IMG/VR virus record: IMGVR_UViG_3300042302_000394
Location: 62,001 to 126,000 of that record
DNA length: 64,000 bases
Direction: 5' to 3' (one strand)
Part shown: one piece after another, positions 21,554 to 41,907 of the stretch
How positions within the stretch are numbered: the stretch's first letter is position 1
How the letters are laid out: the number at the start of each line of letters is the position of its first letter
Translations under genes and position numbers: made by a program
Notes under the pieces: model-generated
The model's database searches: none
The model's input: the letters and a program-made list of their open reading frames with translations, nothing else
What the model was told of the DNA's origin: nothing

Positions 21554-21673
21554 AACAGGATACCTTTTTCGATGGCTTGGAAGCCATTGCTCTACCATTG
21601 AGCGATCTACGCAAAAGCGTGGAGTTGGAATCGAACCAACATGTCATTTAAGACGTTGCTGCATGTATCCTAA
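21554..21673 (-). ncRNA. CAGCAA-motif RNA E2 with permuted tRNA module (T, acceptor hairpin, D, anticodon-like)
   Basis: TTAGGATACATGCAGCAA...GTATCCTGTT; GTTGGTTCGATTCCAAC then GCTCAATGGTAGAGC. Confidence 0.75.
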
Positions 21674-23705: not shown

Positions 23706-23734
23706 ATTATACAGGATATTTATAATCCTGTCAA
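23706..23734 (-). promoter_or_regulatory. sigma70-type promoter with nested TATAAATA
   Basis: TTGACA-N17-TATAAT. Confidence 0.7.
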
Positions 23735-23751
23735 CCTCTATTTTAATAACT

Positions 23752-23828
23752 TGGTGCGCCCACTAGGACTTGAACCTAGGACCAAAGGATTATGAGTCCT
23801 CTGCTCTGACCAACTGAGCTATAGGCGC
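23752..23828 (-). tRNA. tRNA-Met/Ile2(CAT)
   Basis: Canonical cloverleaf, CTCATAA loop. Confidence 0.88.
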
Positions 23829-23837
23829 ATCAATCAT

Positions 23838-23929
23838 TGGTACCAGCGGAGGGGATCGAACCCTCTCAAGAACGCTAATCTGGCGCTAAAAGGTCTATAA
23901 GGCCTCTCTGACTACCAAGTCTCGCTGGC
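23838..23929 (-). tRNA. Atypical tRNA, TAT anticodon, long variable arm
   Basis: 7-bp acceptor, T arm, CCA; CTTATAG loop; 4-nt D loop. Confidence 0.6.
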
Positions 23930-23938
23930 ATGTATGTT

Positions 23939-24028
23939 TGGCGGTGCGACTGAGACTCGAACTCAGAACCCGGATTACGCCGAGCGACGGATTAGCAATC
24001 CGCTCTAATACCATTATAGGACCGCACC
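23939..24028 (-). tRNA. tRNA-Ser(GCT)
   Basis: Long variable arm, G73, CCA. Confidence 0.9.
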
Positions 24029-24037
24029 AAATTTCCA

Positions 24038-24155
24038 TTAGTTGAATCCTCTACACTATATGCCTATCCTCAACACGCTTTACTCGAGTTGACGGTTTAT
24101 TGAATAGGTTACATAACGTATGATCAAACCTCTGTGCTTGCAAAGGATTCAATTA
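24038..24155 (-). ncRNA. Putative structured RNA
   Basis: TTGAATCCT...AGGATTCAA terminal stem between tRNAs. Confidence 0.4.
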
Positions 24156-24156
24156 A

Positions 24157-24240
24157 TGGTGCGAGAGACGGGACTCGAACCCGTATGCCTTTCGGCGGCA
24201 GATTTTAAGTCTGCTGAGTATACCATTTCTCCACTCTCGC
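24157..24240 (-). tRNA. tRNA-Leu(TAA)
   Basis: Long variable arm, CCA. Confidence 0.92.
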
Positions 24241-24257
24241 AAAATACTAACTTTACA

Positions 24258-24326
24258 TTTTTAAAGAACAGTGCTGTTATTAGCAGCGTATGTATAAATT
24301 ATACTGTCTTTCTCAGTGTGTGTCAA
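24258..24326 (-). promoter_or_regulatory. sigma70 promoter followed by hairpin and boxA-like element
   Basis: TTGACA(24326)-N17-TATAAT then TGTTCTTTAAAAA. Confidence 0.65.
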
Positions 24327-24346
24327 CAGGTATTTAAAAATATTTT

Positions 24347-24420
24347 TGGTGCTCAAGCAAAGAATCGAACTTTGATTGCTGTCGTACCAAGACAGTGTAC
24401 TACCATTGTACTACAAGAGC
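24347..24420 (-). tRNA. tRNA-Thr(GGT)
   Basis: Cloverleaf with CCA. Confidence 0.88.
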
Positions 24421-24456
24421 ATTTTTGTGTTATCACTAGGAATCAAATCTAAATGT

Positions 24457-25947
24457 TTATTTTAGAGACATGAGATCATTATAATACGTTTGTACAAACA
24501 AGTGAACTCTATTTTGCCATTCATTGTCTAAGTTGTATTCGCCCCATCGCAGTCTATCTATTTCTTCAACAGTGTATCCAAATTGTAGGACTTCAACTGC
24601 GTTCCAGCCGCCTCTTTTAACATGCGGGGCCGCGCTTTCAGTTAGCAAATTTGTCCATTTTACTACATCTAAAAATGTAAGACCTGATGAATGCTTCCAC
24701 CAAGTTTGTCTCCAGAGACGCTTACCAATAGCGTAAGACTCGGGCAATACCTGTATTATTTCAAATCCATATTTTTCTGCATTACGTTCAAACTCACTAG
24801 TGAATACCGAAGTATCAGGTTTATTAAGTAATAAGGGAATTATTTTCCAGGATGTTATTTTATTATCGACACACCAGTTATGAGTTTCTTTTAAATCATC
24901 TAATGTTTCTGGAGGAATGCCTGCGATAAAACTAAGATGTTCTTTTACTTTTCCCTGCCATCTGTCCTGTAACAAATGAGGCAAATAGTCTTTGGCTTTT
25001 TTTCCGCTAAATGCCTTTCCTACCAAAGCAGATGCATCTTTATTAAAACTTTCTATTCCAAAAAAAGCTCCATAAAGACCGCTTTCCAATAACATATCTT
25101 CAGTATGACGATGAGCCTCAATTAAATCTAATCTTAAATAAGTTGCATATTTAATTTTAAAAGGTAAGGATGATACCATTTTGGCAAATTCTTCCAATCT
25201 TTCGGTGTCTGCATTAAATGTATCGTCTAAAATATAATAATTCGTTGTTCCAAATCTTTCGTAATTGTCAAGTAACTCATCTCTTATATTTTCCATCGGT
25301 TTAAGGAAATCTTTTTTATTTTTTCCAATTAACGGATATTGACAGAATTTACACTTAAAAATGCATCCCCTGGTTGTTTCTAACGGCAATGCTTCATTTG
25401 GCTGTATAGCATCACTGTCATGCCACCTAAAATTACACTGCTCAATTGAAAATCCTTCATTACTTTGATACGAAGATTCTTTTACAATTTTGTAACCGTC
25501 TGCACCTATTTCGACAAATGGCTGTGGACCTTTTTTAAAAATCCAATTGCAAAATTGTAACATTGTATTTTCAGCATGACCTGTAAAATAATAATCAAGT
25601 GTTTTTTTTAATTTTCCTTTAATTATACCAACAGATGGGCCACCGGCTATTATTTTTAAATTTGGATGTTTTGTTTTAAGTTGTTTAATTGCTGAACTGA
25701 ATATAGAAAAGAATACATCGTTAGCTTCTAATAAAATTCCTCCAAGGCCTATAACTTTGGTTTCATCTGTTACAAATTTTTCAAACAGTGCATTTACTTT
25801 ATCCAATGTAAAAATTGGTTCAGAATAATTTATAACCTGTACTGTATAACCAAAGAGTCTTAAATACCAAGCTAATTGGTGACCCCCAATTGATCTAGGA
25901 GCGGCGCCCCGATAATCGCTAATTGTTTGTATAATAATAACATTCAT
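24457..25947 (-). CDS. Radical SAM protein with B12-binding-like N-terminus
   Basis: ETTRGCIFKCKFC, DDTFN, FGIES; paralog of 12239-13771. Confidence 0.85.
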   Translation of the reverse strand: MNVIIIQTISDYRGAAPRSIGGHQLAWYLRLFGYTVQVINYSEPIFTLDKVNALFEKFVTDETKVIGLGGILLEANDVFFSIFSSAIKQLKTKHPNLKIIAGGPSVGIIKGKLKKTLDYYFTGHAENTMLQFCNWIFKKGPQPFVEIGADGYKIVKESSYQSNEGFSIEQCNFRWHDSDAIQPNEALPLETTRGCIFKCKFCQYPLIGKNKKDFLKPMENIRDELLDNYERFGTTNYYILDDTFNADTERLEEFAKMVSSLPFKIKYATYLRLDLIEAHRHTEDMLLESGLYGAFFGIESFNKDASALVGKAFSGKKAKDYLPHLLQDRWQGKVKEHLSFIAGIPPETLDDLKETHNWCVDNKITSWKIIPLLLNKPDTSVFTSEFERNAEKYGFEIIQVLPESYAIGKRLWRQTWWKHSSGLTFLDVVKWTNLLTESAAPHVKRGGWNAVEVLQFGYTVEEIDRLRWGEYNLDNEWQNRVHLFVQTYYNDLMSLK

Positions 25948-25987
25948 AATAGTAAACAAATATTTATCATTAACTGTATATAAAACT

Positions 25988-26062
25988 TGGTCCCGCCAGT
26001 AGGAATCGAACCTACATTTAAGTCTTAGGAGGACCCCGTACTATCCATTGTACTATAGCGAG
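25988..26062 (-). tRNA. tRNA-Arg(CCT)
   Basis: Cloverleaf with CCA. Confidence 0.88.
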
Positions 26063-26065
26063 ATA

Positions 26066-26140
26066 TGGCCGGTCTTGAGAGGATCGAACTCCCACCCTCG
26101 GTTTCGAAGACCGAGATGATATCCATTTCACCAAAGACCG
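26066..26140 (-). tRNA. tRNA-Arg(TCG)
   Basis: Cloverleaf with CCA. Confidence 0.88.
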
Positions 26141-26145
26141 ATATG

Positions 26146-26220
26146 TGGTACCGCCTACAGGAATCGAACCCATATTCGCAGGGTAGAAGCCTGCCGTATT
26201 ATCCATTATACGAAAGCGGT
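26146..26220 (-). tRNA. tRNA-Arg(TCT)
   Basis: GCAGG-CTTCTAC-CCTGC arm, CCA. Confidence 0.88.
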
Positions 26221-26221
26221 G

Positions 26222-26311
26222 TGGCAGTGAGTGAGAGATTCGAACTCTCGTGCCCCTTACGGAACCATCACCTTTCCAAGATGCGCCAATAGGCCTCTCT
26301 GGCAACTCACT
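26222..26311 (-). tRNA. tRNA-Ser(GGA)
   Basis: Long variable arm, CCA. Confidence 0.85.
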
Positions 26312-26317
26312 ATTGTT

Positions 26318-26395
26318 TGGTACCCCTGACCGGATTCGAACCGGTACTTGACAATGTTTAAGACTGTTGCCTGCTACCAATTGGGCTACAGGGGC
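26318..26395 (-). tRNA. tRNA with TAA anticodon and short variable loop (Leu?)
   Basis: ACAGT-CTTAAAC-ATTGT arm, CCA. Confidence 0.75.
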
Positions 26396-26403
26396 AAATA
26401 GGT

Positions 26404-26550
26404 TTTTGAGAGACCAGCTATCTTTCTCAAGGACTCACTGGCTTGTCTCGTATGAAGGAGTTTAAACTACCTTGTGTTGCTACTGGTGTGTCAGTCTCAA
26501 GAATAGGGACCTAGCGCACAAGGGACTCTACTTCAACGTCTATCTCAAAA
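26404..26550 (-). ncRNA. Putative structured RNA
   Basis: TTTTGAGA...TCTCAAAA terminal stem; shares AAGTAGAGTC...CTAGGT with 27118-27327. Confidence 0.45.
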
Positions 26551-26552
26551 CT

Positions 26553-26628
26553 TGGCGTCCCATAGCGGATTCGAACCGCTGTAAATACCGTGAAAGGGTA
26601 CTATCCTAGGCCTCTAGATGAATGGGAC
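26553..26628 (-). tRNA. tRNA-Glu(TTC)
   Basis: Cloverleaf with CCA. Confidence 0.9.
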
Positions 26629-26633
26629 ATGTT

Positions 26634-26708
26634 TGGTAGTAACGGTGAGATTCGAACTCACACCGGGCACCGTATGAAGGTGTTGCACAACCATTATGCT
26701 ACGTTACC
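26634..26708 (-). tRNA. tRNA-Met(CAT)
   Basis: Cloverleaf with CCA. Confidence 0.85.
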
Positions 26709-26799
26709 ATATCAAAACACACTAGCGGAATCGAACCGTTACGCCTCCTGCACTACGTGAGGAAGCGGATGCCCACACTAGTTCTAGTGAGCTTTGATA
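26709..26799 (-). ncRNA. Structured RNA with AT-rich terminal helix and T-loop
   Basis: ATATCAAAGCTCACTAG...CTAGTGTGTTTTGATAT; internal CGGTTCGATTCCG. Confidence 0.5.
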
Positions 26800-26877
26800 T
26801 GGTAGGACTGTCCGGATTCGAACCGGAACCTGGCGGATTAAAAGTCCGCTGTGCTAAACCGTTGACACTACAATCCC
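26800..26877 (-). tRNA. tRNA-Lys(TTT)
   Basis: Cloverleaf with CCA. Confidence 0.9.
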
Positions 26878-26882
26878 ATATA

Positions 26883-26959
26883 TGGTCCCTAGCGTCAGAT
26901 TCGAACTGACACCTCATCGGTTAAGAGCCGAGTACGCTACCGTTAAACGCCAGCTAGGG
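26883..26959 (-). tRNA. tRNA-Lys(CTT)
   Basis: Cloverleaf with CCA. Confidence 0.85.
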
Positions 26960-27078
26960 TTGTTGCATATTAAATTTGTCTTTAATGTGCCAACCCTAGA
27001 CCATATACGGGATCTAAGATTGACACTATCGTTTACCTGAACGTTTCATGTCATTACCTCTTTTGTGTTTAAGTTTCT

Positions 27079-27107
27079 ATTATACAACCTTTTAGGGTAG
27101 TTGTCAA
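27079..27107 (-). promoter_or_regulatory. sigma70-type promoter
   Basis: TTGACA-N17-TATAAT. Confidence 0.7.
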
Positions 27108-27117
27108 CCGCATTGAA

Positions 27118-27327
27118 TTTGTAAGCTGTTGCGTCCCTCATATCGCAACCATTTTCCCTTGTAATAAAGCCGGCAGGGTCAAGATACGTCACTTGGGCTT
27201 TGTCCAGACGATACTCCAACTGTATTCCGATCTTCCGATCGGACGGGGATCGAACCCGCTACCTTCTACTGTTTTGGTAGTTCGAACATACCTAGACAGC
27301 GTGACTCTACTTGCTGACACTTACAAA
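27118..27327 (-). ncRNA. Variant CAGCAA-motif RNA with permuted tRNA module
   Basis: TTTGTAAGTGTCAGCAA...CTTACAAA; CGGGTTCGATCCCCG, TCCGATC-GGAA-GATCGGA, ATAC-AGTTGGA-GTAT. Confidence 0.65.
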
Positions 27328-27330
27328 ACT

Positions 27331-27408
27331 TGGTGGACGATAGTGGAATCGAACCACTGTCACGGCAGGGTTGCTACCGCCTGTTATCCTTTACAACAGT
27401 CATCGCCC
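27331..27408 (-). tRNA. Atypical Ala-like tRNA
   Basis: G3:U70, A73, CCA, T arm; 8-nt anticodon loop. Confidence 0.55.
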
Positions 27409-27415
27409 ATTAACT

Positions 27416-27490
27416 TGGTGCCCACATATGGAATCGAACCACAATCCCCGGTTTCGTAGACCAGTGTATTATCCATTATACTATGCGGGC
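27416..27490 (-). tRNA. tRNA-Arg(ACG)
   Basis: Cloverleaf with CCA. Confidence 0.9.
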
Positions 27491-27496
27491 AAATAA

Positions 27497-27559
27497 AACA
27501 GGATAGCATTTTTGGTTTCATTAACAGTGAAATTTTTGATTTTGCTGTTGCTATCCTAA
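27497..27559 (-). ncRNA. CAGCAA-motif RNA E4 carrying an Asn(GUU) anticodon arm
   Basis: TTAGGATAGCAACAGCAA...TTTCA-CTGTTAA-TGAAA...TGCTATCCTGTT. Confidence 0.75.
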
Positions 27560-27621
27560 AAATTTGTGCTGGGTAGGTGCTCCAGCGCCGATCGTCTTGA
27601 TATTATCTCACGGCCCTTGTT

Positions 27622-27697
27622 TGGTGCCACAAACTGGACTCGAACCAGTAACACACGAATTTTCAATCCGCTGCTCTACCATTGGAGCTATTGTGGC
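27622..27697 (-). tRNA. tRNA-Phe(GAA)
   Basis: Cloverleaf with CCA. Confidence 0.9.
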
Positions 27698-27705
27698 AAA
27701 ATGTT

Positions 27706-27780
27706 TGGTGGAGGCCGGGGGTATCGAACCCCTCTAGTCACGATGCTTGCAAGGCAACGCCGCAGCCCTCTGCTGCCCCC
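27706..27780 (-). tRNA. tRNA-Ala(TGC), reduced D arm
   Basis: G3:U70, CTTGCAA loop, CCA. Confidence 0.65.
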
Positions 27781-27789
27781 AAATTGTAT

Positions 27790-27868
27790 TGGCTCCGTGT
27801 GTGAGGATCGAACTCACCTAATCATTGATTAACAGTCAAGTCCTTGCACCATGCTTGGATTTCACGGA
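27790..27868 (-). tRNA. tRNA-Asn(GTT)
   Basis: CTGTTAA loop, CCA. Confidence 0.8.
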
Positions 27869-27876
27869 ATAAATTT

Positions 27877-27951
27877 TGGCGATCCTGCGGGGAATCGAAC
27901 CCCGATATCCGACTAGACAGGCCGGTATAATAACCACTATATGACAGGACC
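27877..27951 (-). tRNA. tRNA-Asp(GTC)
   Basis: Cloverleaf with CCA. Confidence 0.88.
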
Positions 27952-27958
27952 ATTAACT

Positions 27959-28045
27959 TGGTGGAGACGACTGGAGTCGAACCAGTAGTGCCTTTCGGGC
28001 GGCGGATTTACAGTCCACTGGGGTTACCAATTTTCCTACATCTCC
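27959..28045 (-). tRNA. tRNA-Tyr(GTA)
   Basis: Long variable arm, CCA. Confidence 0.9.
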
Positions 28046-28051
28046 ATAACT

Positions 28052-28127
28052 TGGCGCCACAGACGGGAATCGAACCCGCCTAAATCGGATAGACAATCCG
28101 GTGCCCTACCCAGAGGACTACTGTGGC
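28052..28127 (-). tRNA. tRNA-Asp(GTC)
   Basis: Cloverleaf with CCA. Confidence 0.85.
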
Positions 28128-28132
28128 AAAAC

Positions 28133-28231
28133 TAATAACACAAGCATAACATTAACCAGTTATGCCTGCCACTCTCATCCCTCGCTGGCAGGGAGACTGA
28201 ATGCCATCCTACAGTGCGTTGAGTGTTGTTA
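28133..28231 (-). ncRNA. Putative structured RNA
   Basis: TAACAACAC...GTGTTATTA terminal pairing between tRNAs. Confidence 0.35.
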
Positions 28232-28234
28232 ACT

Positions 28235-28311
28235 TGGTACTCCGTACGGGACTCGAACCCGTTTTTCCAACTTGAAAGGCTAGCGTCCTAAACCACGTAG
28301 ACGAACGAAGT
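28235..28311 (-). tRNA. tRNA-Glu(TTC)
   Basis: Cloverleaf with CCA. Confidence 0.85.
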
Positions 28312-28315
28312 AAAA

Positions 28316-28428
28316 TTCTTATACAACTACACACTCACAGGACTCGAACCTGCCAACTGGACTTCTCGTCCAGCTAGATACCACCTCTATCTGCTTGGCC
28401 TAAGCATTTGTGTGTATGTGTATAAGAA
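28316..28428 (-). ncRNA. tRNA-like multi-hairpin RNA with extended terminal helix
   Basis: TTCTTATACA...TGTATAAGAA ends; GCAGGTTCGAGTCCTGT T arm; no CCA. Confidence 0.5.
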
Positions 28429-28445
28429 CTTCTTATACTGTAAAT

Positions 28446-28516
28446 TTTTAAAGAACATTTACATCTAATTGCTTAGTGTATGTGTTAATTATAGCAAGGT
28501 TTTACCTCCTTGTCAA
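28446..28516 (-). promoter_or_regulatory. sigma70 promoter followed by boxA-like element
   Basis: TTGACA(28516)-N17-TATAAT then TGTTCTTTAAAAA. Confidence 0.65.
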
Positions 28517-28559
28517 TAGTCTTTGCAACTATTTTTGTTGTATTTTAACAACACTATTA

Positions 28560-28625
28560 AACAGGATACTGTTTGCTTTTCACAGCCAAAAAGTGAAATA
28601 TTTTGGTTTGCTGTAAGTATCCTAA
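28560..28625 (-). ncRNA. CAGCAA-motif RNA E5
   Basis: TTAGGATACTTACAGCAA...TTTCAC-TTTTTGGCT-GTGAAA...AGTATCCTGTT. Confidence 0.7.
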
Positions 28626-28627
28626 AC

Positions 28628-28701
28628 TGGTGCGGGGTAAGGGAATCGAACCCTTAACTACTGGGTGGAAGCCAGTGATCTTACCATTAAACGAACCACG
28701 C
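28628..28701 (-). tRNA. tRNA-Gly(TCC)
   Basis: ACTGG-CTTCCAC-CCAGT arm, CCA. Confidence 0.82.
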
Positions 28702-28791
28702 ATAAACTTGGCCCTCGAGGTGTATGTCGCAGTACACATTACTAACTATTGGCAAGGGTGTATACGGCCCCGCTTAACTCAAGGATAAAAT

Positions 28792-28867
28792 TGGTGCAAC
28801 CTGTAGGGATCGAACCTACTTCAATGGCTCTTCAGACCACCGCTATGACCACATCAGCTAAAGTTGC
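28792..28867 (-). tRNA. tRNA-Phe(GAA)
   Basis: Cloverleaf with CCA. Confidence 0.85.
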
Positions 28868-28874
28868 ATTGTAT

Positions 28875-28950
28875 TGGTGCCCCAGTCCGGAATCGAACCG
28901 ACTTCCCCTGCTTACAAGACAGGACCTCATCCATTAAAGGCTTCAAGGGC
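28875..28950 (-). tRNA. tRNA-Thr(TGT)
   Basis: Cloverleaf with CCA. Confidence 0.82.
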
Positions 28951-28957
28951 AATAAAC

Positions 28958-29034
28958 TGGAACATCGGGTGGGACTCGAACCCACGACTGGACGGATTTG
29001 CAATCCGCTACATTGGCCGCTCTGTCACCGATGC
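28958..29034 (-). tRNA. tRNA-Cys(GCA)
   Basis: U73, CCA. Confidence 0.88.
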
Positions 29035-29040
29035 ATAAAC

Positions 29041-29119
29041 TGGTCTGTGTGGCAGGATTCGAACCTGCGACCTCCGACTTCCAAGGCCGGCCGTCTGACC
29101 TGACTGACATTACACACAG
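29041..29119 (-). tRNA. tRNA-Pro(TGG)
   Basis: Cloverleaf with CCA. Confidence 0.85.
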
Positions 29120-29126
29120 ATAAAAT

Positions 29127-29201
29127 TGGTAGCCACGGACAATTTCGAAATGTCGACTCCCGCCTTATCAAGACGGTACTCTGCCTCTGAGTTACGTGGC
29201 C
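29127..29201 (-). tRNA. tRNA-Ile(GAT)
   Basis: TTGATAA loop, CCA. Confidence 0.85.
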
Positions 29202-29206
29202 ATAAA

Positions 29207-29608
29207 TTACCACTCTGCGTATTCTGTTATTATACGAGAGTTTTTATCTTTTCTTTTTGTTGATTCTACACATCGCAGTTTAACTTCTTTTACATCGCAT
29301 ATTTCTGCAATAGGAACGAGATATACTTTATCTAATTCATTTACATAGACTGCAATATAATCGATGTTACTTTCATTGTAAGAAACTCTATTTGTAAATG
29401 TGTTTTGAGATAGTTTAATTGTAACTATTCCGTTACTTTCTAACGATCTAAACTTAACTTGAATTCGTAAAAGTTTACCGTCGTGTCTATCTAACACATA
29501 ATCATAAGGACAACCTTGTGGCATTTTGCCAGTCCAATATCCTCTTTTGGCAGAAACGAGCACAAATGCTGCTTCTCCTATTTCACCTTTTTCGTTTGAT
29601 ATACTCAT
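29207..29608 (-). CDS. PD-(D/E)XK homing-type endonuclease
   Basis: KGEIGE...PYDYVLD...RIQVK...IDYIAVY. Confidence 0.8.
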   Translation of the reverse strand: MSISNEKGEIGEAAFVLVSAKRGYWTGKMPQGCPYDYVLDRHDGKLLRIQVKFRSLESNGIVTIKLSQNTFTNRVSYNESNIDYIAVYVNELDKVYLVPIAEICDVKEVKLRCVESTKRKDKNSRIITEYAEW

Positions 29609-29646
29609 AGTGTTCTCCTACAAGTATTTATAACGCTCGCCAGGAA

Positions 29647-29678
29647 AGCGATTGTTATACCATTTAACTACAAGAGGA
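29647..29678 (-). pseudogene. 5' half of a tRNA gene
   Basis: CCTCTTGTAGTTAAATGGTATAACAATCGCTT = acceptor 5' strand plus D arm; no 3' half found. Confidence 0.5.
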
Positions 29679-29690
29679 ATAAACTGCTTA

Positions 29691-29763
29691 GGGGTGACTA
29701 ACGGGATTTGAACCCGTACTGACAAGGTCACAACATGTAGTGCTACCATTACACTATAGCCAC
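29691..29763 (-). tRNA. tRNA-His(GTG), no encoded CCA
   Basis: TTGTGAC loop, C73; acceptor extended by CTTAGG/CCTAAG. Confidence 0.8.
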
Positions 29764-29786
29764 ACCTAAGAAGTCTAACAAAATAT

Positions 29787-29860
29787 TGGCACCCGGACTA
29801 GGGATCGAACCTAGGCTAACAGAGTCAAAGTCTGTTGTGCTACCATTACACAATCCGGGA
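29787..29860 (-). tRNA. tRNA-Gln(TTG)
   Basis: Cloverleaf with CCA. Confidence 0.88.
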
Positions 29861-29866
29861 ACAAAA

Positions 29867-29926
29867 AACAGGATGCTTATTTTTCAATTAAAAGTTGAAT
29901 TTTTTGATTTGCTGGACGCATCCTAA
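29867..29926 (-). ncRNA. CAGCAA-motif RNA E6 carrying a Lys(UUU) anticodon arm
   Basis: TTAGGATGCGTCCAGCAA...TTCAA-CTTTTAA-TTGAA...GCATCCTGTT. Confidence 0.75.
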
Positions 29927-29929
29927 AAC

Positions 29930-30004
29930 TGGCATACCCCCTTGGATTTGAACCAAGCCTAACGGTTTTGGAGACCGGCGTGCTGCCGCTGACACTAGGG
30001 ATAC
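29930..30004 (-). tRNA. tRNA-Trp(CCA)
   Basis: CTCCAAA loop, CCA. Confidence 0.88.
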
Positions 30005-30011
30005 ATAATAA

Positions 30012-30076
30012 AACAGGATCAACTTTGGTTTTTTTGAATAATAAAAAAGTTTTTAAGTTTGCTGAACTGATCCTAA
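30012..30076 (-). ncRNA. CAGCAA-motif RNA E7
   Basis: TTAGGATCAGTTCAGCAA...TTGATCCTGTT. Confidence 0.7.
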
Positions 30077-30079
30077 AAC

Positions 30080-30195
30080 TGGTACGACCGGTAGGTCTCG
30101 AACCTACAAGAGCACGGTAACTATGTTATGTGCCCCTTCCCCTGACCTATGCTATGAGCATAACGGGAGGTCTGCCATATTCCACTTACGGTCGC
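30080..30195 (-). tRNA. Oversized (116 nt) tRNA-like RNA with expanded anticodon arm
   Basis: GCGACCG/CGGTCGT acceptor, T arm, CCA; extra TATGC-TCATA-GCATA hairpin; long variable arm. Confidence 0.55.
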
Positions 30196-30203
30196 ATAAT
30201 GTA

Positions 30204-30232
30204 ATTATACAATCTTATGTAGAATTTGTCAA
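30204..30232 (-). promoter_or_regulatory. sigma70-type promoter
   Basis: TTGACA-N17-TATAAT. Confidence 0.7.
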
Positions 30233-30238
30233 TTGTCT

Positions 30239-30330
30239 TGGCGGAAAGCAGAGGAGTCGAACCCCATCCCATTTCTGAGAACCCAGTTTTCAAGGCTGGT
30301 CGCAGGACCAACCCCGCTGCATTACTTTCC
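30239..30330 (-). tRNA. tRNA-Ser(TGA)
   Basis: Long variable arm, CCA. Confidence 0.88.
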
Positions 30331-30339
30331 ATTTAAACT

Positions 30340-30415
30340 TGGTCTCGCATGAAGGACTCGAACCTTCGAAATCCTGGCCCCAAACCAGGTGGCATAGCCG
30401 CTAACCGAATGCGAG
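30340..30415 (-). tRNA. tRNA-Pro(TGG)
   Basis: Cloverleaf with CCA. Confidence 0.85.
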
Positions 30416-30422
30416 ATAAAAT

Positions 30423-30511
30423 TGGTGGAGCCTGAAGGAATTGAACCTCTTGCCAGCCACCCCACTTAATAATGGCTACCAGGTTACAGCTGGCAATGGG
30501 GGACAAGCTCC
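30423..30511 (-). tRNA. D-armless tRNA-Tyr(GTA)-like RNA
   Basis: Acceptor, GCCAG-CTGTAAC-CTGGT arm, long variable arm, T arm, CCA; no D stem. Confidence 0.55.
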
Positions 30512-30540
30512 AAATTGTTAACACTCTCTTTCGAAAGTGC

Positions 30541-30613
30541 TTATTAAAACAAACTGTTACGCTATGCGTCCTGTTCTGATTCAGAGTCAGCAGGTACCAA
30601 TTTGCTTTAATAA
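30541..30613 (-). ncRNA. Structured RNA with AT-rich terminal helix
   Basis: TTATTAAAGCAAATTG...CAGTTTGTTTTAATAA. Confidence 0.4.
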
Positions 30614-30725
30614 CTAGTATTTTTTTATCCACATAAGGATAAGCCATCCACTAGTCCGCCCGTTTAGAACATGTTTTAAGTGCGTTCCCCGGGCCTCGTT
30701 CCCGTACTATATTACACTTTGCGAT

Positions 30726-30875
30726 CTACGACCGCCCTTGAGCAATCTCTCGCTTCCTACTTGCTTCGTAATACGCAGTTGCACGTTGTAACTTTTCCAA
30801 AATCATCTTGCGAAGATCTTGTTTAGTTAAAGTATGCGCTTTTGTAAACTCAGCTTGTCTCTTCAAATCTGTCAT
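30726..30875 (-). CDS. Small basic hypothetical protein (49 aa, MTDLKRQAEF)
   Basis: AAGGAAG RBS immediately after the attenuator terminator. Confidence 0.55.
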   Translation of the reverse strand: MTDLKRQAEFTKAHTLTKQDLRKMILEKLQRATAYYEASRKREIAQGRS

Positions 30876-30887
30876 TCTTCCTTGCGG

Positions 30888-30924
30888 AAAACAAAAAACC
30901 CCAGGGTTTTTAATCCTAGGGTCC
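30888..30924 (-). terminator. Intrinsic terminator of putative attenuator
   Basis: GACCCTAGG-loop-CCTGGGGTT followed by TTTTGTTTT. Confidence 0.75.
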
Positions 30925-30951
30925 TTGAAGTTTGTTGTGTTAACTTGTGTG

Positions 30952-31098
30952 TTACACGACAGTCCTCCGGACCCTAGAAATCTCTGGTGTACGATCATAT
31001 GATAGACTTCCCGCATTAATCGATAACCAACCGCAGGCTATTACACCTACCTGTTTGGGCATCGTATTAAATTGTTGATGTCTATTGGACGATTGCAT
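30952..31098 (-). CDS. Putative attenuator leader peptide (48 aa, all 20 amino acids)
   Basis: MQSSNRHQQFNTMPKQVGVIACGWLSINAGSLSYDRTPEISRVRRTVV; 3' end complementary to terminator 5' arm. Confidence 0.65.
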   Translation of the reverse strand: MQSSNRHQQFNTMPKQVGVIACGWLSINAGSLSYDRTPEISRVRRTVV

Positions 31099-31157
31099 TT
31101 TGTTTTCTCTTTAAAACCTTTTGTTACATACACTACCTTATTGCAGTGTATGTTCTA

Positions 31158-31186
31158 ATTATACAGTTATTTAGCATTGTTGTCAA
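31158..31186 (-). promoter_or_regulatory. sigma70-type promoter at head of tRNA array
   Basis: TTGACA-N17-TATAAT. Confidence 0.75.
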
Positions 31187-31320
31187 CCCTTATTTGTTCT
31201 TTTGAACAAAAAGTTTTTAACAACTTCTCTTCCTAACTAGTCTCTATTGTACTGCTTCTATTTATGTCTGTCAATAAGTATGTGGTTAAAATGCCACAAT
31301 TTTGGCGAATTTTTATTTTA

Positions 31321-33006: not shown

Positions 33007-34014
33007 TCAAGTCATCCACCAAAATAGCCTGTTAGACCAGCCTTTTGTATTCCATTTCATATCCCAATCTTCTGCCCAACTTTTATAAAAATATAAATTA
33101 GATCCTCTTGCACCGTCTACATAGGGTATTGTTTGATAATCATCAAGTTTTTCTAACACGTTCATAGGAAAATATAAAAGACTGGCATGCTTAGGATGCA
33201 CGATAAGATGTGTATCTATACGTCCCCAATAGTTTTTAGCAGTATGATAATCTTGTATAGTATAAGGAGTCATTGCAAAATTTATACTAACATCGCTGAC
33301 TTCTTTTAGATCACGGACACCACTTATTAATTCTTCCCAGGAAGATCCTCTGCGAAACCATTCGTATGTTTCTCCATAACCATCTGCACTGACACTGCAT
33401 TTAACAGATTGCCAACCCTTCCATAGTTCATCTCTAAAGGGACTAATGCCGTTTGTTATATATTCTAATGTACAATGACTTCTATCAAACTGCTGTAAGT
33501 ATTCTAATATCTTCCAATGGTTAGGGTCGAGAAAAGGCTCGCCGCCGGTAAATTTTAGACAAGTTATCTGCGGTAGTAATTCTCCTAACTCTTTTAAAAA
33601 TTCGTCAGTTAATTCAAAACTATCGGAAGCTATCGGAGTTATCTTTAAAAACTTTTTCCATCCTGTAGATAACTCAGGACCACAATGAGCACAAGTTAGT
33701 TGGCACTTGTTACTCATTTTAAATTGAATTGTTTTTAATGTCCTATCTTGTGTGGCAAACGGTGTACTGGTACGCATACTAGGTTGATCTGCAGATTCTA
33801 AAATTTCGCATCTGTTACAAAATGGTCGAGTCTTTTTAGAATAACCGTTCTTTAACTCCTCTCTTAATTCTAGTAATTTAGAATTATTCCATGCTGCCTG
33901 TATTCCGTTATTAATATGTGCTATCCTTGCATCCTTAGACGGTTCTGCACAGCACGGTCGCGTCCATCCGTCTGTTTCGATGCTCATCATATTTTCTAAC
34001 CAGGCACATTTCAT
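33007..34014 (-). CDS. Radical SAM protein with N-terminal SPASM/twitch-like Cys region
   Basis: CQLTCAHC, FTGGEPF, ITNG; PCC...CNRC. Confidence 0.8.
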   Translation of the reverse strand: MKCAWLENMMSIETDGWTRPCCAEPSKDARIAHINNGIQAAWNNSKLLELREELKNGYSKKTRPFCNRCEILESADQPSMRTSTPFATQDRTLKTIQFKMSNKCQLTCAHCGPELSTGWKKFLKITPIASDSFELTDEFLKELGELLPQITCLKFTGGEPFLDPNHWKILEYLQQFDRSHCTLEYITNGISPFRDELWKGWQSVKCSVSADGYGETYEWFRRGSSWEELISGVRDLKEVSDVSINFAMTPYTIQDYHTAKNYWGRIDTHLIVHPKHASLLYFPMNVLEKLDDYQTIPYVDGARGSNLYFYKSWAEDWDMKWNTKGWSNRLFWWMT

Positions 34015-35441
34015 ACTACAGCATTTGCAAAGTTTTGTGCCAATTGTATTCTTAATTGATTGTTCAAGCCTGGCCAGTGTACTACCCAATCACCCTGCTG
34101 CCACTGTCCGTCGTTGCCTAACATGTCAATTCCGTCGACTCCATACATCTTGTAATCGTAGCTGTTCATAGTACGTTGTGGTACAAGTTTAATAATATCC
34201 TTGTAGGTAACATAAGTGTCGATAACACACTGCTGATCAAACCATTTCTTATCGTTGAGGTAGTCCTTGCGCTTACCGATCATATCCTCTAACCACACCC
34301 GACTGTTCTCACTGTTCTTGACAAAGAAGCTGCCTGTGTTAAGACTGGCAATGTCAGTGGCCATGATGATGTCATAGCTGTCATCAATTACATCTTCTAT
34401 CTTGCAATTGAAGTTGGTAATCATAGCATCGTTGTCTAACCACCACACCCAAGATAGATTAGGATTATCGTTCATTACTTGCAAAATATGCACAAACTTA
34501 TCAAAGTGAACTGCTTCTGAACTAAAGTCGTCCATTTTAGAAAAGGCTTTGTATCCGCGATGTGTTGCATACTTGTCTTTGTTATTGAACCAAGTGTGTT
34601 TGGCAAGTTCAAAATGTGGCTCATTGAACATACTAACAATAGCGTACTTGCTAGGATCACCACGCTTCCAAAGTTGCGGAATACTGTACCACAATCCCTC
34701 AAAATCAATGTAAGGATCTTTTAAGGACTCTAGTGTGATATGCAGGCTTAGGCTAGGAATAGGACTGAACAACATAACATCGTCTTTGTTCCATACCTGA
34801 TTGATAGTTTCATTTTCATCTTTACGCAATATCCATTCTGCTGCATCATCAAAGTGTTTGCGATACTTGTCAAATACAGCACGACTGGCTAAGCAGGTAT
34901 AGGTACTGTGCTTAACTGTACGATAATGCCTGTGGGGACCAAACAACAAAATGCTAGGGTAAACTTGTGCTGTGTAACGGTACACATCGTCATGCGGATT
35001 GACTGCAATCATCTTGCCTGTTTGCTGCTCAAACTGTGTTACAGTATCTAGCATGTCTTGTATTGCTGTTTGAAAATGCGGATAGTCATCTTCTGCATGA
35101 TACCACAAGTCTGTACACTGTTGATCTACAATTTCATAGACTTTCTTGCAAGTGTAGCTAGCACCAGTTCCGCCTGTTACTGCTACAAACTCTGTAGACG
35201 ATTTGCATTGTGCAAGGATGATTTTAAAATCAGCAACTGCTTCGGGTGTGCTGTTGTCATCTAAGACTACTAGCTTAACATCGTGCCCTTCACAGTGATT
35301 AATACTATCTACAATACTGCTAAGGCAAACATTTACAAGCTCATGCTTAGGTACTTTGTGATAGCGGCCGCCCATGTTTTCACCGTTGAGCATGTTAACA
35401 CGGGTACAAGTTCTTAATACAATTAGTAAGTTTCTTTTCAT
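34011..35441 (-). CDS. Two-domain glycosyltransferase (GT-A + GT34-like)
   Basis: VLDDNS, AEDDY; WWLDNDA, LNTGSFF, FDQ, VVHWPG. Confidence 0.75.
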   Translation of the reverse strand: MKRNLLIVLRTCTRVNMLNGENMGGRYHKVPKHELVNVCLSSIVDSINHCEGHDVKLVVLDDNSTPEAVADFKIILAQCKSSTEFVAVTGGTGASYTCKKVYEIVDQQCTDLWYHAEDDYPHFQTAIQDMLDTVTQFEQQTGKMIAVNPHDDVYRYTAQVYPSILLFGPHRHYRTVKHSTYTCLASRAVFDKYRKHFDDAAEWILRKDENETINQVWNKDDVMLFSPIPSLSLHITLESLKDPYIDFEGLWYSIPQLWKRGDPSKYAIVSMFNEPHFELAKHTWFNNKDKYATHRGYKAFSKMDDFSSEAVHFDKFVHILQVMNDNPNLSWVWWLDNDAMITNFNCKIEDVIDDSYDIIMATDIASLNTGSFFVKNSENSRVWLEDMIGKRKDYLNDKKWFDQQCVIDTYVTYKDIIKLVPQRTMNSYDYKMYGVDGIDMLGNDGQWQQGDWVVHWPGLNNQLRIQLAQNFANAVV

Positions 35442-37218: not shown

Positions 37219-39282
37219 TCACTTTGATGTAGCTCTGTAGGTACCGTCCCAATCTGCGGCTAGATCTCTTGTACGCATCTCAGCAATACGCTCAATCCAT
37301 AATTCGTAATAGTGATCCATCTTGCCGTCAAACTCACCTGTAAGTTCTTGGCACAGTGTAATGGCCTTGTCCCACTGTTGTTGACGATAATATTCTAACA
37401 TTAGTTCATGATGCTCTCGAGCCATGATCCAATCTGCTGCCACAGTGGCATCTGGATTGTAAAACACTGTGAATATGTTAACGCCAATAGTCTTACCTTT
37501 AACAGCAATACAGTCTAATGGAATTGTAAAGTAATTGTCGCCTACTCGAGCCTGTGTAAACTCGCTAATGATGATCAACACACCATAGTTCTTGGTCTGT
37601 CCTTCTAGTCGAGCAGTTAAACTTACTGAGTCGCCTAGTACGTCATAACCAAATCGATCCTTACTACCAATGTTACCAATTAGTGTAGGGCCAGTGTTGA
37701 TACCCAATCCGCAACCTACTAAGGGCTTACCTTCTTTGGTAAGTTCAATATTAAACAGCTCAACAGCGTGCAACATTTCAAGACCTGTACGCACTCCTGC
37801 TAACACATGATCCGGATCTTGTTCTTCTTGAATAGGAGCACCGTGTACGTGTAATGACGCATCACCTATGAACTTGATCAAACACCCATTGTTACGCAGT
37901 ATAGGCTCCGCAATGGCAGTCATGTAACGGTTCATAGTCTGTGTAAATGCCACAACGTCATCACCGTATGTCTCACCTAGTCCCGTAAAGTTACGCATGT
38001 CGCTCATGATAACAGTTAAATCTTTCTTCTCACCACCCAGTTTGATAAAGCTAGGATCTTTTTGTAAGCGTTCAACAATAACAGGATTTACGTAACTGCC
38101 AAACTGTTTCTTAATCTGACTCTTCTGTAGGAACTCGCTTACAAACTTGATGCCATAGGCATGCAGAGCGACCAAAGTTGTGCCAACTGCAAAGGCAGTA
38201 GCATCGAATAAGAATAAAAGACTGCTGTAAGCATAGATGCTGCCAGCAATGCCACCGCCAATAATAACAACTGTCGCTGCCAATCCCGCATAGGTCCACC
38301 TCGTTAAAAATAATAGCAATATACCTGCAATTAGAATAGCTACTGTTTCTAAGTCATCTGCGTAGCCTGGACGCTGAATAGTTTTGCCGTTAAGCATTGT
38401 ACCTAATAAACTTGCCTGCATATCCTGTGGCCAAATTTCGCCGCGAGCAGTAGCTACTGGTTGAACTAATCCTGCCGCACTTAATCCCACTATAACGATT
38501 TCACCGTTGAAGTCTTTGGGCAATTTGGCAAGACTGTGTTGCTTGGGTTGCTGGCTCCAATCAATCCATACACGACTCAATGGATCTACGTTGATGCGAT
38601 TCAGTTTAGGAATACGCACTGCTTCAACCCCCATGTCTGTAATCTTAACTTGTATTTTTGTATCTCCTGCCGCAGTCCTAAGTGTTTCTAAACCGATTGC
38701 AGGATGCACAGTTTCTCCGCTTAGTATTAGCAACGGCATACGACGAACAACACCGTCTATTTCAGGAAAAGTATTTACAACACCTACACCAGCCGCACGT
38801 TCTTCTAGCATAGGAACGTTGGCGATAATACCTGGATATTCTACTAGACTACCTTCTGGGTCAACGCCTACAATTTGTACAGCACTTCCGAACGTCTTAT
38901 TCTTGCCTGTGGTGCTGGCAACCTGCGGCAGCACCACTGAATATTTTTCTAAGGCTTTGGCCAGTTGAGTATCTTGATTGAATCGATCTGATTCAGGCAT
39001 GAGGATATTGAGCACAACAAGTCCAGCGTTTCTATCATATAGGTCTTTAATAATGTCAGCATATAGTCCTCGAGGAAAAGGGAATTGTCCATACTTGTCT
39101 AATGCAGCTTCATCTATATTAACAGTATGTACAGGAATGTCTTGTTTAGGTTGGCTAATGATAAGTTGATCGAAGTATCGCAGTCTAACTGATTCAACAA
39201 ATGCAGGATCTGCAAATCTGACACCTGCTATCAATACCAATGTAATTAATGCCAACCACGGGCTTAGTAATATTTTTTTCAT
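37219..39282 (-). CDS. CHASE2-domain class III adenylate/guanylate cyclase
   Basis: VNIDE..L..YGQFPFPR, DGVVRR; SDMRNFT, KFIGDA, GDSV, VKGK. Confidence 0.9.
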   Translation of the reverse strand: MKKILLSPWLALITLVLIAGVRFADPAFVESVRLRYFDQLIISQPKQDIPVHTVNIDEAALDKYGQFPFPRGLYADIIKDLYDRNAGLVVLNILMPESDRFNQDTQLAKALEKYSVVLPQVASTTGKNKTFGSAVQIVGVDPEGSLVEYPGIIANVPMLEERAAGVGVVNTFPEIDGVVRRMPLLILSGETVHPAIGLETLRTAAGDTKIQVKITDMGVEAVRIPKLNRINVDPLSRVWIDWSQQPKQHSLAKLPKDFNGEIVIVGLSAAGLVQPVATARGEIWPQDMQASLLGTMLNGKTIQRPGYADDLETVAILIAGILLLFLTRWTYAGLAATVVIIGGGIAGSIYAYSSLLFLFDATAFAVGTTLVALHAYGIKFVSEFLQKSQIKKQFGSYVNPVIVERLQKDPSFIKLGGEKKDLTVIMSDMRNFTGLGETYGDDVVAFTQTMNRYMTAIAEPILRNNGCLIKFIGDASLHVHGAPIQEEQDPDHVLAGVRTGLEMLHAVELFNIELTKEGKPLVGCGLGINTGPTLIGNIGSKDRFGYDVLGDSVSLTARLEGQTKNYGVLIIISEFTQARVGDNYFTIPLDCIAVKGKTIGVNIFTVFYNPDATVAADWIMAREHHELMLEYYRQQQWDKAITLCQELTGEFDGKMDHYYELWIERIAEMRTRDLAADWDGTYRATSK

Positions 39283-39921: not shown

Positions 39922-41907
39922 TTACTTGTTTCTAATAACTGATACCGAGCAGCCTGCTGGATTTGTACAGGTCTGTTGTAGTGTGTAGGCATCTCCTACA
40001 CCTGTTTGTGTGACGCTAACAGTGTTTTTATTACCAATTAAGTTTAATAAAGTACTGTGTCCTGTGCCAGTTTGATTAACTGTTGCTGAGTTGTTGTCTC
40101 CGCTGACATTTACAATGCTTAGATTGTTGCTGCCGGCTTGTGTGTTGTTAACAGTGTTCCAATTGCCTGTTAATGTAGCATAACTTGCATTACCTGTTCC
40201 AGTCTTTTGTGTAATGTTTACAGTATTAATATCCCATGTAGTTTTTACACTAGCGGTATTGTTATTGCTCTGTTGTTGAGCAGTGACTGCATTACCATTA
40301 CCAGCACTTTCAAAATTGAATATATTGTTGTTGACATCACCACCGTTAGCAGTCTGTTGCTTAATGTCAATATTGTTGCCCCAGGCATTCATTTTAACAC
40401 CTGCAATATTACCTTGTCCGAACTGTTTTATACTCAGTATGTTGCCGTTGCCATTTAACGTTGCCCACCCGCTGTCGGTTCCTGTAATGGCATTGTTATT
40501 TCCATCTTGCTCTAATGTAACGGAATTGTTTGTGCCAGCCACAACCTGTTTGATATAAATGCTGTTGCCACTAATGTTAGGAGCGGTTCGAGAATATGTA
40601 GGAGCAGTTCCGTAAGTGGGTGTGATGGTATAGGTAGTGTTAGTAGTGCTACTTGGTGTACCGTTGCTAGTTGTAGTTGATCCGTCACTCCATGTAGTAG
40701 TAGTCACCGGTGTTGTAGTTGTTGTAGTCACTGTAGTTGTTCCTACGAACCCGTCAGTAAAGTTTCCTGTGGTAGTTGGGCGAGTAATTGTTATAGATCC
40801 AGTGCTTGAACTAGATGAACTTGTGCTAATACTGTTGCTAGTTGATGTACCAACTACCGTTGGTCCTTCGTTGGATACTGCTGCACCTGCTGTACCTGGA
40901 TTGCTAGGTGTGCCACCTGAACCTGTATCACTGCTGGTTACTCCATCATTTAAATCGTAGTAGTAGGTAACTTCAGCAATCTGCACACTATTACCGCTGT
41001 TATTTTTAATACTTGGAAACTTTATAAAGTAATAGACATAGGCGGTAGTGTTGTCCACTGTTATTTCACCACTGACACTAAATCTAGAATCAGATAAAGT
41101 CAACGGACCTTCTTTAATCAGAGTCCAGTTAACACCATCATTAGATCCGTATAGTTTATAACTTGCTGGATCTCGTTCAACTGAATCATTAGCAGTAGTA
41201 ATGGTAAACTTTTGAACTACACGACCTTGACTTAGTTTAACAGTGACACCTGCGTTCTGTTTATCAAAGTTCAAGTACTTAGTGCCAACGTTGCCGTCAA
41301 AGGCATTAGCAGCACCTTCGTTGCTGGGACTATTATAGCTGGTAGGATAGATGTTGCTGATTACAACTGGCGTGCTGTTGGTTCTAATCATTTGCCAGTT
41401 CGGTGTTGCAGGTGCCGGCTGTGCTGTTTGTCCTGCTGATAACGGTGTTGTGCTAGCAAATGTATAGTTATTTAGGTCACTGCTGGTAACACTAGTATCC
41501 ATATTAGTAAATGTAGCACTAGCACCGTAGTTATAACCTTGTGCCGTTGTAATCACATTACCAAAGAACCCAGATCCAATATAGAAGATAGCACCATTAC
41601 CTAGAGCAGTAATATCGCCGTGATCATGGACAATACTGTGTTGTGTGCCGTTGCTGTTCATCAATTTCAATCCGTGCTTCCCTGGATTAGTTGTGCTATT
41701 AAAGAACTGAAAGTATTGTCCTGCGCTAACCGTCACTGTTTGAAAGTTCTTGTTGTAAGGTGCAATAAAGTTGCTGGCATATAATGTGGTACCACTCCAG
41801 CTGTATTGTACGTCAAATATTTGATTGATGCCAAACTTGCCGTCGGTGATAGCACCAAAGGCATTTGTGCAGACTAGCAACATCATTAAAAATATTTGTC
41901 TTATCAT
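39922..41907 (-). CDS. Secreted protein: discoidin-like domain, Thr/Ser linker, curlin-like repeats
   Basis: Signal peptide; AFDGN.GTKY...TAND...RDP; repeated QxGxxN. Confidence 0.75.
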   Translation of the reverse strand: MIRQIFLMMLLVCTNAFGAITDGKFGINQIFDVQYSWSGTTLYASNFIAPYNKNFQTVTVSAGQYFQFFNSTTNPGKHGLKLMNSNGTQHSIVHDHGDITALGNGAIFYIGSGFFGNVITTAQGYNYGASATFTNMDTSVTSSDLNNYTFASTTPLSAGQTAQPAPATPNWQMIRTNSTPVVISNIYPTSYNSPSNEGAANAFDGNVGTKYLNFDKQNAGVTVKLSQGRVVQKFTITTANDSVERDPASYKLYGSNDGVNWTLIKEGPLTLSDSRFSVSGEITVDNTTAYVYYFIKFPSIKNNSGNSVQIAEVTYYYDLNDGVTSSDTGSGGTPSNPGTAGAAVSNEGPTVVGTSTSNSISTSSSSSSTGSITITRPTTTGNFTDGFVGTTTVTTTTTTPVTTTTWSDGSTTTSNGTPSSTTNTTYTITPTYGTAPTYSRTAPNISGNSIYIKQVVAGTNNSVTLEQDGNNNAITGTDSGWATLNGNGNILSIKQFGQGNIAGVKMNAWGNNIDIKQQTANGGDVNNNIFNFESAGNGNAVTAQQQSNNNTASVKTTWDINTVNITQKTGTGNASYATLTGNWNTVNNTQAGSNNLSIVNVSGDNNSATVNQTGTGHSTLLNLIGNKNTVSVTQTGVGDAYTLQQTCTNPAGCSVSVIRNK

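Follow-up and report, generated by a model that had tools for sequence, protein, structure and literature searches.

A leader ORF with all 20 amino acids at the head of phage tRNA arrays, a candidate attenuator of viral tRNA expression

The DNA analysed here (the window) is a stretch of 64,000 nucleotides, covering positions 62,001 to 126,000 of the IMG/VR virus record IMGVR_UViG_3300042302_000394; all the features described below are on its minus strand. A perfect sigma-70 consensus promoter (TTGACA-N17-TATAAT, 12/12) was found at 31186-31158, with an inferred transcription start near 31151, and a promoter-like site in tandem (TTGACA-N17-TACAAT, 11/12) lies upstream at 31274-31246. The 5' end of the predicted transcript contains a 10-bp hairpin (31152-31127), followed by an A-rich translation initiation region (31112-31099) with a weak Shine-Dalgarno-like AGAGA, which is usual in this phage, since most of its genes also have weak Shine-Dalgarno sequences. 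The ATG of a 48-codon ORF (31098-30952) is located at 31098, 53 nt after the inferred start. The ORF uses 37 distinct codons, including five Ser codons, Arg AGA/CGT/AGG/CGG and Ile ATA/ATT, and all 20 amino acids are present by codon 39. A small hairpin (AGGY...GCCU) is located inside the ORF at 31050-31033, and the codons for D-R-T-P-E-I (30996-30979) are found immediately 5' of a long hairpin.

The long hairpin (30979-30914, -31 kcal/mol) has three tiers and an 11-bp base in which UUCUAGGGUCC is paired with GGACCCUAGGA. Its 5' arm is formed by the last nine leader codons, and the UAA stop codon (30954-30952) lies in its upper helix. The strand AAGGACCCUAGG (30926-30915) is both the 3' arm of the base of this hairpin and the 5' arm of an intrinsic terminator (30926-30888), composed of a 12-bp stem (AAGGACCCUAGG / CCUGGGGUUUUU), a 9-nt loop and a UUUUUUGUUUU tract; the long hairpin thus competes with the terminator, and is here called the antiterminator. 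A 49-codon ORF with an AAGGA Shine-Dalgarno sequence (30875-30726) starts 13 nt after the U-tract, followed by a region with a conserved structured RNA of unknown function (30725-30510) and a tRNA-Tyr(GUA)-like element (30505-30418) that was not called by ARAGORN or Infernal. The tRNA array extends from 30415 to 21070, starting with tRNA-Pro, and includes 39 tRNAs called by ARAGORN for all 20 amino acids, with five further perfect promoters at 30232, 28516, 27107, 24326 and 23734. The first-pass annotation of this locus, made from the sequence alone, had described the promoter, the ORF with its amino acid and codon content, the terminator, the 11-nt complementarity extending over the stop codon and the internal promoters, and its statements of fact were all confirmed.

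On this single sequence, the presence of all 20 amino acids is only mildly unusual: it occurs in 2.2% of random 48-codon ORFs of this composition and in 3 of 150 program-listed ORFs of 40-56 aa in the window (P about 0.02). The number of distinct codons is not significant (null 33.4 +/- 1.9, P = 0.055). The leader codons are not enriched for codons read by the tRNAs of the phage (0.83, against 0.86 in phage genes), and they are somewhat rarer than average (P = 0.005), partly because of the hairpin arm.

Searches in known families and deposited genomes gave no homologues. Rfam scans of the tRNA region and of 30400-31300 found nothing significant. A weak match to the freshwater-2 motif (RF02980) on the 5' hairpin and initiation region reached 19.9 bits, below the gathering threshold of 49.9 bits, and was not reproduced in a relative (L021); a match to Phe_leader (RF01859) was at chance level (18.3 bits, E = 3.2); and no T-box (RF00230) was matched even at E up to 10. 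No DNA or protein match was found in 50,697 deposited phage genome records, and neither the leader nor the downstream 49-aa ORF had hits in Pfam or PHROG. A search with the downstream ORF returned only identical copies. The neighbouring upstream hydroxylase gene led to relatives at 70% identity (L003 and L012) with promoters leading straight into tRNA-Met and no leader, indicating that the element is not universal among relatives of this phage.

In contrast, a search of viral contigs with the 48-aa translation returned 74 loci at 44-100% identity, and a profile search returned 196 stretches in metagenomes, mostly from freshwater lakes, and one contig of a Polynucleobacter MAG. The invariant 18-mer GATCGYACACCRGAGATT, which encodes DRTPEI, was found in 116 viral contigs. 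Together these searches gave 144 distinct elements in uncultured freshwater phage contigs, ranging from a few kb to 383 kb, and 127 unique peptides of 40-60 residues, with ORFs of about 43-57 codons. The 57 aligned homologues keep the same order of parts: a TTGACA / TATAAT-like pair at the same distance, a 5' hairpin with different stem sequences (by inspection of the alignments), an A-rich initiation region, the ATG in its conserved ..GAGAAACAAA context (..GAGAAA(A)CAAA-ATG), the ORF, a hairpin with the stop codon at its apex, and a nearly invariant terminator, which is also the RNAalifold consensus of 56 sequences. The more divergent members keep the ORF and the switch, but some have a variant terminator.

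Several lines of evidence, all of them comparative, indicate that the ORF is selected as a reading frame. In the body of the ORF all length differences are multiples of three. In the hairpin arm the nucleotides needed for pairing (GGGTCC, GGAGGAC) are kept but read in different frames, giving tails such as SRVRRTVV, CQGSRRTVV and RVREDIV, and a +2/+1 or +1/-1 pair of indels restores the frame before the stop codon. Upstream of the hairpin, pN/pS is 0.55 in the ORF frame and 0.99 and 1.00 in the other two frames, and entropy is highest at third codon positions. The ATG and the ORF are intact in the 127 unique variants.

The switch is also selected as RNA. All 50 distinct hairpin segments in the first set fold into the same three-tier hairpin, with a base RGGGUCC/GGACCCY, a middle GGAG/CUYC and a variable apical helix. 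In 137 of 138 elements the stop codon is within 0-4 nt of the apical loop or overlaps it, with 35 different apical helices, all complementary, and 19-32 nt (median 26) separate the stop codon from the shared strand. In 135 of 137 elements at least 6 nt of the terminator 5' arm are also paired in the antiterminator, and the mean dG is -25.8 kcal/mol for the antiterminator and -14.7 for the terminator. The shared strand covaries with both partners: AGGGUCC pairs with GGACCCU, which pairs with GGGGUU; GGGGUCC pairs with GGACCCC; and in divergent members GGGUUC pairs with GAACCCU, which pairs with AGGGUU. Both alternative helices are therefore maintained.

Across relatives, the presence of all 20 amino acids is far beyond chance. 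In the first set, 54 of 55 unique peptides contain all 20 even when the start Met is ignored, whereas shuffling residues within alignment columns gives a mean of 24.6 (maximum 35) and none of 5000 shuffles reaches 54; combining the observed substitutions independently predicts 21 of 54, against 53 observed. Scarce residues are nearly always present in one copy but at changing places: the single Cys occupies 8 alignment columns, Tyr 4, His 4 and internal Met 7. For example, Tyr is found at SLSYD or, where that is SLSLD, at IASYW. The larger set was retrieved partly through the nucleotide core, and so is not biased towards the N-terminal sequence; in it 114 of 127 unique peptides have all 20, eleven lack only Cys, and one each lacks Lys, Ala or Val. 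The shuffle tests are limited by the relatedness of the sequences, but the many relocations and the sub-family representatives do not depend on that: among representatives less than 50% identical in the variable N-terminal part, 10 of 11 have all 20, while composition-matched nulls give 3.4% each, or 7.6% if DRTPEI is held fixed (P about 1e-14 to 1e-11). Coverage is complete before the hairpin arm begins in 99 of 127 peptides, although 14 have Val only in the tail.

The invariant parts of the peptide are a Trp (W24) and the DRTPEI motif (D35-I40), while the N-terminus and the tail vary. The motif codons allow only two synonymous variants (CGY, CCR) across all members, and the distance of the motif from the stop codon is 8-11 codons in 125 of 127 peptides. 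In about 90% of peptides Asp and Glu are absent from the first 30 or so codons and are supplied upstream of the hairpin only by this motif, which may explain part of the invariance, but not all of it. The invariant Trp and motif codons are not needed by a generic sampler of amino acids and point to an extra or different function; a nascent-chain effect or an RNA-level role remains possible.

Of 96 elements with at least 1300 nt of sequence from the ATG onward, 95 have a same-strand tRNA within that distance. Where 3.5 kb or more is available, the median is 18 tRNAs in the next 4 kb, with none on the other strand, and 74 of 86 elements have no tRNA in the 3 kb upstream. The gap from the terminator to the first called tRNA has a median of 411 nt. 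An ORF of about 50 codons, homologous to that at 30875-30726, is present in about 60% of related loci, and the conserved structured RNA of about 200 nt is present in essentially all loci (it was found in 70+). Of its predicted pairs 20 of 26 carry compensatory changes, and in the window the region 30725-30416, which also includes the tRNA-Tyr-like element, folds with z = -4.45; no Rfam family matched it. In 71 of 89 loci no promoter scoring 10/12 or better lies between the terminator and the first tRNA, but in the other 18 there is one, usually after the structured RNA.

Gene context and conservation are best explained by a ribosome-mediated (leader-peptide) transcription attenuator at the head of the phage tRNA array, with a leader that is a "pangram" of the amino acids. 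In this model, host RNA polymerase starts at the consensus promoter and a ribosome translates the leader close behind it. If decoding is fast, the ribosome enters the last 8-9 codons and the stop codon and keeps the 5' arm and apex of the antiterminator melted, without covering the shared strand, so that GGACCCUAGG pairs with CCUGGGG and transcription ends at the U-tract. If the ribosome is delayed at any of codons 2-40, because any one aminoacyl-tRNA is scarce, damaged or cleaved, or if translation does not occur, the more stable antiterminator would form first and polymerase would read through into the small ORF, the structured RNA and the tRNA genes, resulting in a supply-and-demand feedback loop on viral tRNA expression. 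The spacer of 3, 5 or 6 nt between the invariant GAGAUU and the RGGGUYC helix places that helix about 13 nt or more from the first P-site base when the Glu codon is in the A site, roughly where a ribosome stops unwinding mRNA in toeprinting and helicase studies (a figure that was not tested here), so the sensing region would run up to about codon 40. The only Glu codon in the leader of the window lies at the edge of the region where a stalled ribosome would leave the antiterminator free.

What the analysis demonstrates is the anatomy of the element, the conservation of the ORF as a translated frame, the conservation and covariation of both helices, the retention of all 20 amino acids and the constant position in front of tRNA arrays; the direction of regulation, the coupling between ribosome and polymerase and the sensing of a shortage of each amino acid are inferences. 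There are no experimental data, the response of read-through to aminoacyl-tRNA supply was not measured, and there is neither a cultured phage nor a known host. Confidence in a translation-dependent attenuator at the head of the array is high, while confidence in the full explanation, including amino acid sensing, is moderate. The small hairpin at 31050-31033 is the only ORF-internal structure conserved in relatives, and could be an RNA polymerase pause hairpin; it does not pair with the antiterminator arm, which leaves it undecided whether the element has a counterpart of the 1:2 pause or anti-antiterminator hairpin of trp. Since no conserved upstream partner of the antiterminator arm was found, an untranslated leader should read through, and the switch would rely wholly on tight ribosome-polymerase coupling and should be leaky. 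The five perfect promoters inside the array of the window also count against the model, and the strong promoters before the first tRNA in 18 of 89 loci suggest that the immediate cargo may be the small ORF and the structured RNA rather than the tRNAs.

The first-pass annotation had proposed attenuation with the geometry of trp and his leaders, in which stalling on any depleted or cleaved tRNA turns on phage tRNA supply, and this interpretation is supported. The comparisons it had set as trials in advance all came out as it predicted: the ORF and the complementarity are conserved in relatives, antiterminator and terminator covary, and 20-amino-acid coverage is retained even where the N-terminal half is barely alignable and is far rarer in composition-matched nulls. 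However, it had expected a poorly conserved peptide, which does not fit the invariant motif and Trp, and its link to anticodon-nuclease defences is speculation.

Other readings were considered less likely. The switch could sense general translation status, that is, whether ribosomes initiate and keep pace with polymerase at all, as in host shut-off, ribosome shortage or stress, with no sensing role for the amino acid composition. The fact that no conserved 1:2 hairpin was found, and the lack of runs of any codon and of enrichment for codons read by phage tRNAs, would agree with this, but it leaves unexplained the retention of all 20 amino acids through repeated relocation of single-copy residues and in sub-families less than 50% identical, and it is regarded as unlikely. 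A nascent-peptide arrest sensor of the TnaC, SecM or SpeFL type is about as doubtful: the invariant Trp and DRTPEI, which lie 9-14 residues from the C-terminus when the ribosome is at the stop codon, could interact with the exit tunnel and stall or time the ribosome on the hairpin in response to a specific cue. The near-fixed distance of the motif from the stop codon and the position of the stop at the hairpin apex are in favor of this reading, which can coexist with attenuation. However, there is no similarity to any known arrest peptide, the retention of all 20 amino acids is not explained, and the scarce synonymous change in the motif makes an RNA-level role equally possible.

An ordinary small-protein gene, whose 48-aa product acts in trans and whose hairpin over the stop codon only stabilises the 3' end, would agree with the conserved core, the coding signature and the strong promoter and terminator. 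This is very unlikely, since the terminator 5' arm is shared with a more stable competing hairpin with three-way covariation, the C-terminal residues change frame while the nucleotides are kept, the all-20 constraint makes no sense for a folded protein of this size, no Pfam or PHROG family was matched and the element precedes tRNA arrays. A structured non-coding RNA with an incidental ORF was suspected at first, because the 268-nt transcript folds far better than shuffles (-87 kcal/mol, z = -7.0) and has no database protein hits, and a resemblance to RNase P conserved regions was seen by eye. Both ideas were rejected, given the absence of Rfam support, the lack of conserved structure in the ORF body other than the small hairpin, the frame-compensating indels and the asymmetry of pN/pS between frames. 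The high z-score of the window's own sequence is not a conserved feature.

The closest known systems are the leader-peptide attenuators of enterobacterial amino acid operons (trp, his, pheA, leu, thr and ilv), which share the promoter-proximal short ORF, the terminator with a 5' arm that is also the 3' arm of a competing antiterminator, and the decision by ribosome position, where reaching the stop codon favors termination and stalling upstream favors read-through. The element departs from them in having no runs of one regulatory codon but every amino acid, mostly in 1-3 copies, and it is this feature that makes it distinct within a known mechanism. In addition, its leader is longer and has an invariant motif, it is encoded by a virus, and the regulated products would be tRNAs and an RNA instead of biosynthetic enzymes; absence of translation should give read-through rather than super-attenuation. 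T-box riboswitches also choose between antiterminator and terminator in response to tRNA charging, but they bind one specific uncharged tRNA directly, without translation, and control aminoacyl-tRNA synthetase or amino acid genes; the stem I specifier loop and T-box sequence were not found here. The mgtL and mgtP leaders of Salmonella mgtA and mgtCBR, and the pyrBI and pyrE coupling attenuators, use ribosome speed relative to RNA polymerase as the signal, but sense proline-codon decoding or UTP-dependent polymerase pausing for one pathway, while here all 20 amino acids are sampled and the cargo is a tRNA array. The arrest peptides TnaC, SecM and SpeFL share a conserved Trp and an acidic/Pro motif at a fixed distance from a stop codon placed at a regulatory RNA element, but there is no sequence similarity, stalling has not been shown here, and the known examples act through Rho or exposure of the ribosome binding site, not by melting an antiterminator.

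In its strongest form, judged slightly more probable than not, the leader is a universal sensor of decoding capacity, with at least one probe codon for each amino acid, gating transcription of the virus's own tRNA array. This would be the first attenuator whose regulated product is tRNA itself, and it could also raise viral tRNA supply when host defences or host shut-off deplete any tRNA. Full-text literature searches found no description of a pan-amino-acid leader or of attenuation of phage tRNA genes, although absence from the literature searched is not proof of absence. The reasons why phages carry tRNA arrays, and how these are controlled, have been debated for decades, with proposals including codon compensation, replacement of degraded host tRNAs and escape from tRNA-cleaving defences. 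A conserved leader sampling all 20 amino acids in front of the arrays would mean that the phage measures decoding capacity and adjusts tRNA supply to match, which makes the question directly testable. It would also extend classical attenuation from one amino acid and one pathway to a general sensor, and provide a compact natural part of about 270 nt reporting shortage of any aminoacyl-tRNA. The elements define a family of more than 140 members that is absent from Rfam and from sequenced phage isolates.

The window is identical, over the stretches compared, to part of a 207.8-kb IMG/VR contig. Freshwater Betaproteobacteria are inferred as the likely hosts, given the hit in a Polynucleobacter MAG and the betaproteobacterial-type tmRNA that relatives carry upstream of the element. 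A cyclase protein encoded in the window resembles those of Methylophilales phage Melnitz and Pelagibacter phage HTVC008M.

The region between the attenuator and the first tRNA contains a conserved structured RNA of about 200 nt (30510-30725, minus strand), for which no Rfam family was found. This RNA is present in 70+ related loci, and 20 of its 26 predicted base pairs carry compensatory changes. Its central domain is variable and looks tRNA-like in some copies, and the RNA may be the constant cargo of the attenuator. A 49-codon ORF with a good Shine-Dalgarno sequence is also found in this region (30726-30875, minus strand), starting 13 nt after the terminator. A homologous ORF of about 50 aa, basic and helical (..HTLTxEQFKKLI..RA..Y..KRE..), is present in about 60% of the related loci. 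It has no Pfam or PHROG family.

Next to the structured RNA is a tRNA-Tyr(GUA)-like element (30418-30505, minus strand), with a normal acceptor stem, T arm, CCA end and long variable arm, but an odd D region. This element was missed by both ARAGORN and the Infernal tRNA model, and it aligns with the tRNA-Tyr that heads the array in many relatives. A sub-threshold match to the tRNA-Sec model (33.9 bits, against a gathering score of 47) was located between tRNA-Pro and the next perfect promoter (30243-30330, minus strand), which is probably another uncalled long-arm tRNA. At the far end of the array, next to a tRNA-Met, there is a weak match to the Y-RNA-like YrlA model (21554-21671, minus strand; 29.3 bits, against a gathering score of 69). 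Three short hairpin-like stretches between tRNAs (28562-28622, 29869-29923 and 30014-30073, minus strand) gave repeated weak matches to the same unrelated Rfam model (Dicty Class I RNA, 24-29 bits), suggesting a recurring small stem-loop in the tRNA spacers.

Six perfect 12/12 TTGACA-N17-TATAAT promoters were found in about 7.5 kb of the tRNA region (23706-31186, minus strand), all of them on the strand of the tRNAs, and an 11/12 site lies 60 nt upstream of the leader promoter (31274-31246).

Several relatives (loci L038, L044, L046, L047, L051, L057, L078 and L079) encode a tmRNA of the permuted / betaproteobacterial type, with tag peptides ending in ..FAMVA, ..FALAA or similar. In these loci the tmRNA is located upstream of the element, at about 0.3-2.2 kb on the + strand, 1.5-2.7 kb upstream of the leader, whereas no tmRNA was found by ARAGORN in the window.

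A 500-aa radical-SAM protein with a weak, below-threshold B12-binding match is encoded inside the tRNA array (24457-25959, minus strand), and a second radical-SAM/SPASM protein is encoded upstream (33007-34089). Two other genes, at 37219-39282 and 39922-41907 (minus strand), encode a CHASE2-adenylate/guanylate cyclase, 41% identical to that of Methylophilales phage Melnitz, and a protein with curlin repeats and an F5/8 type C domain, both of which are unusual phage cargo.
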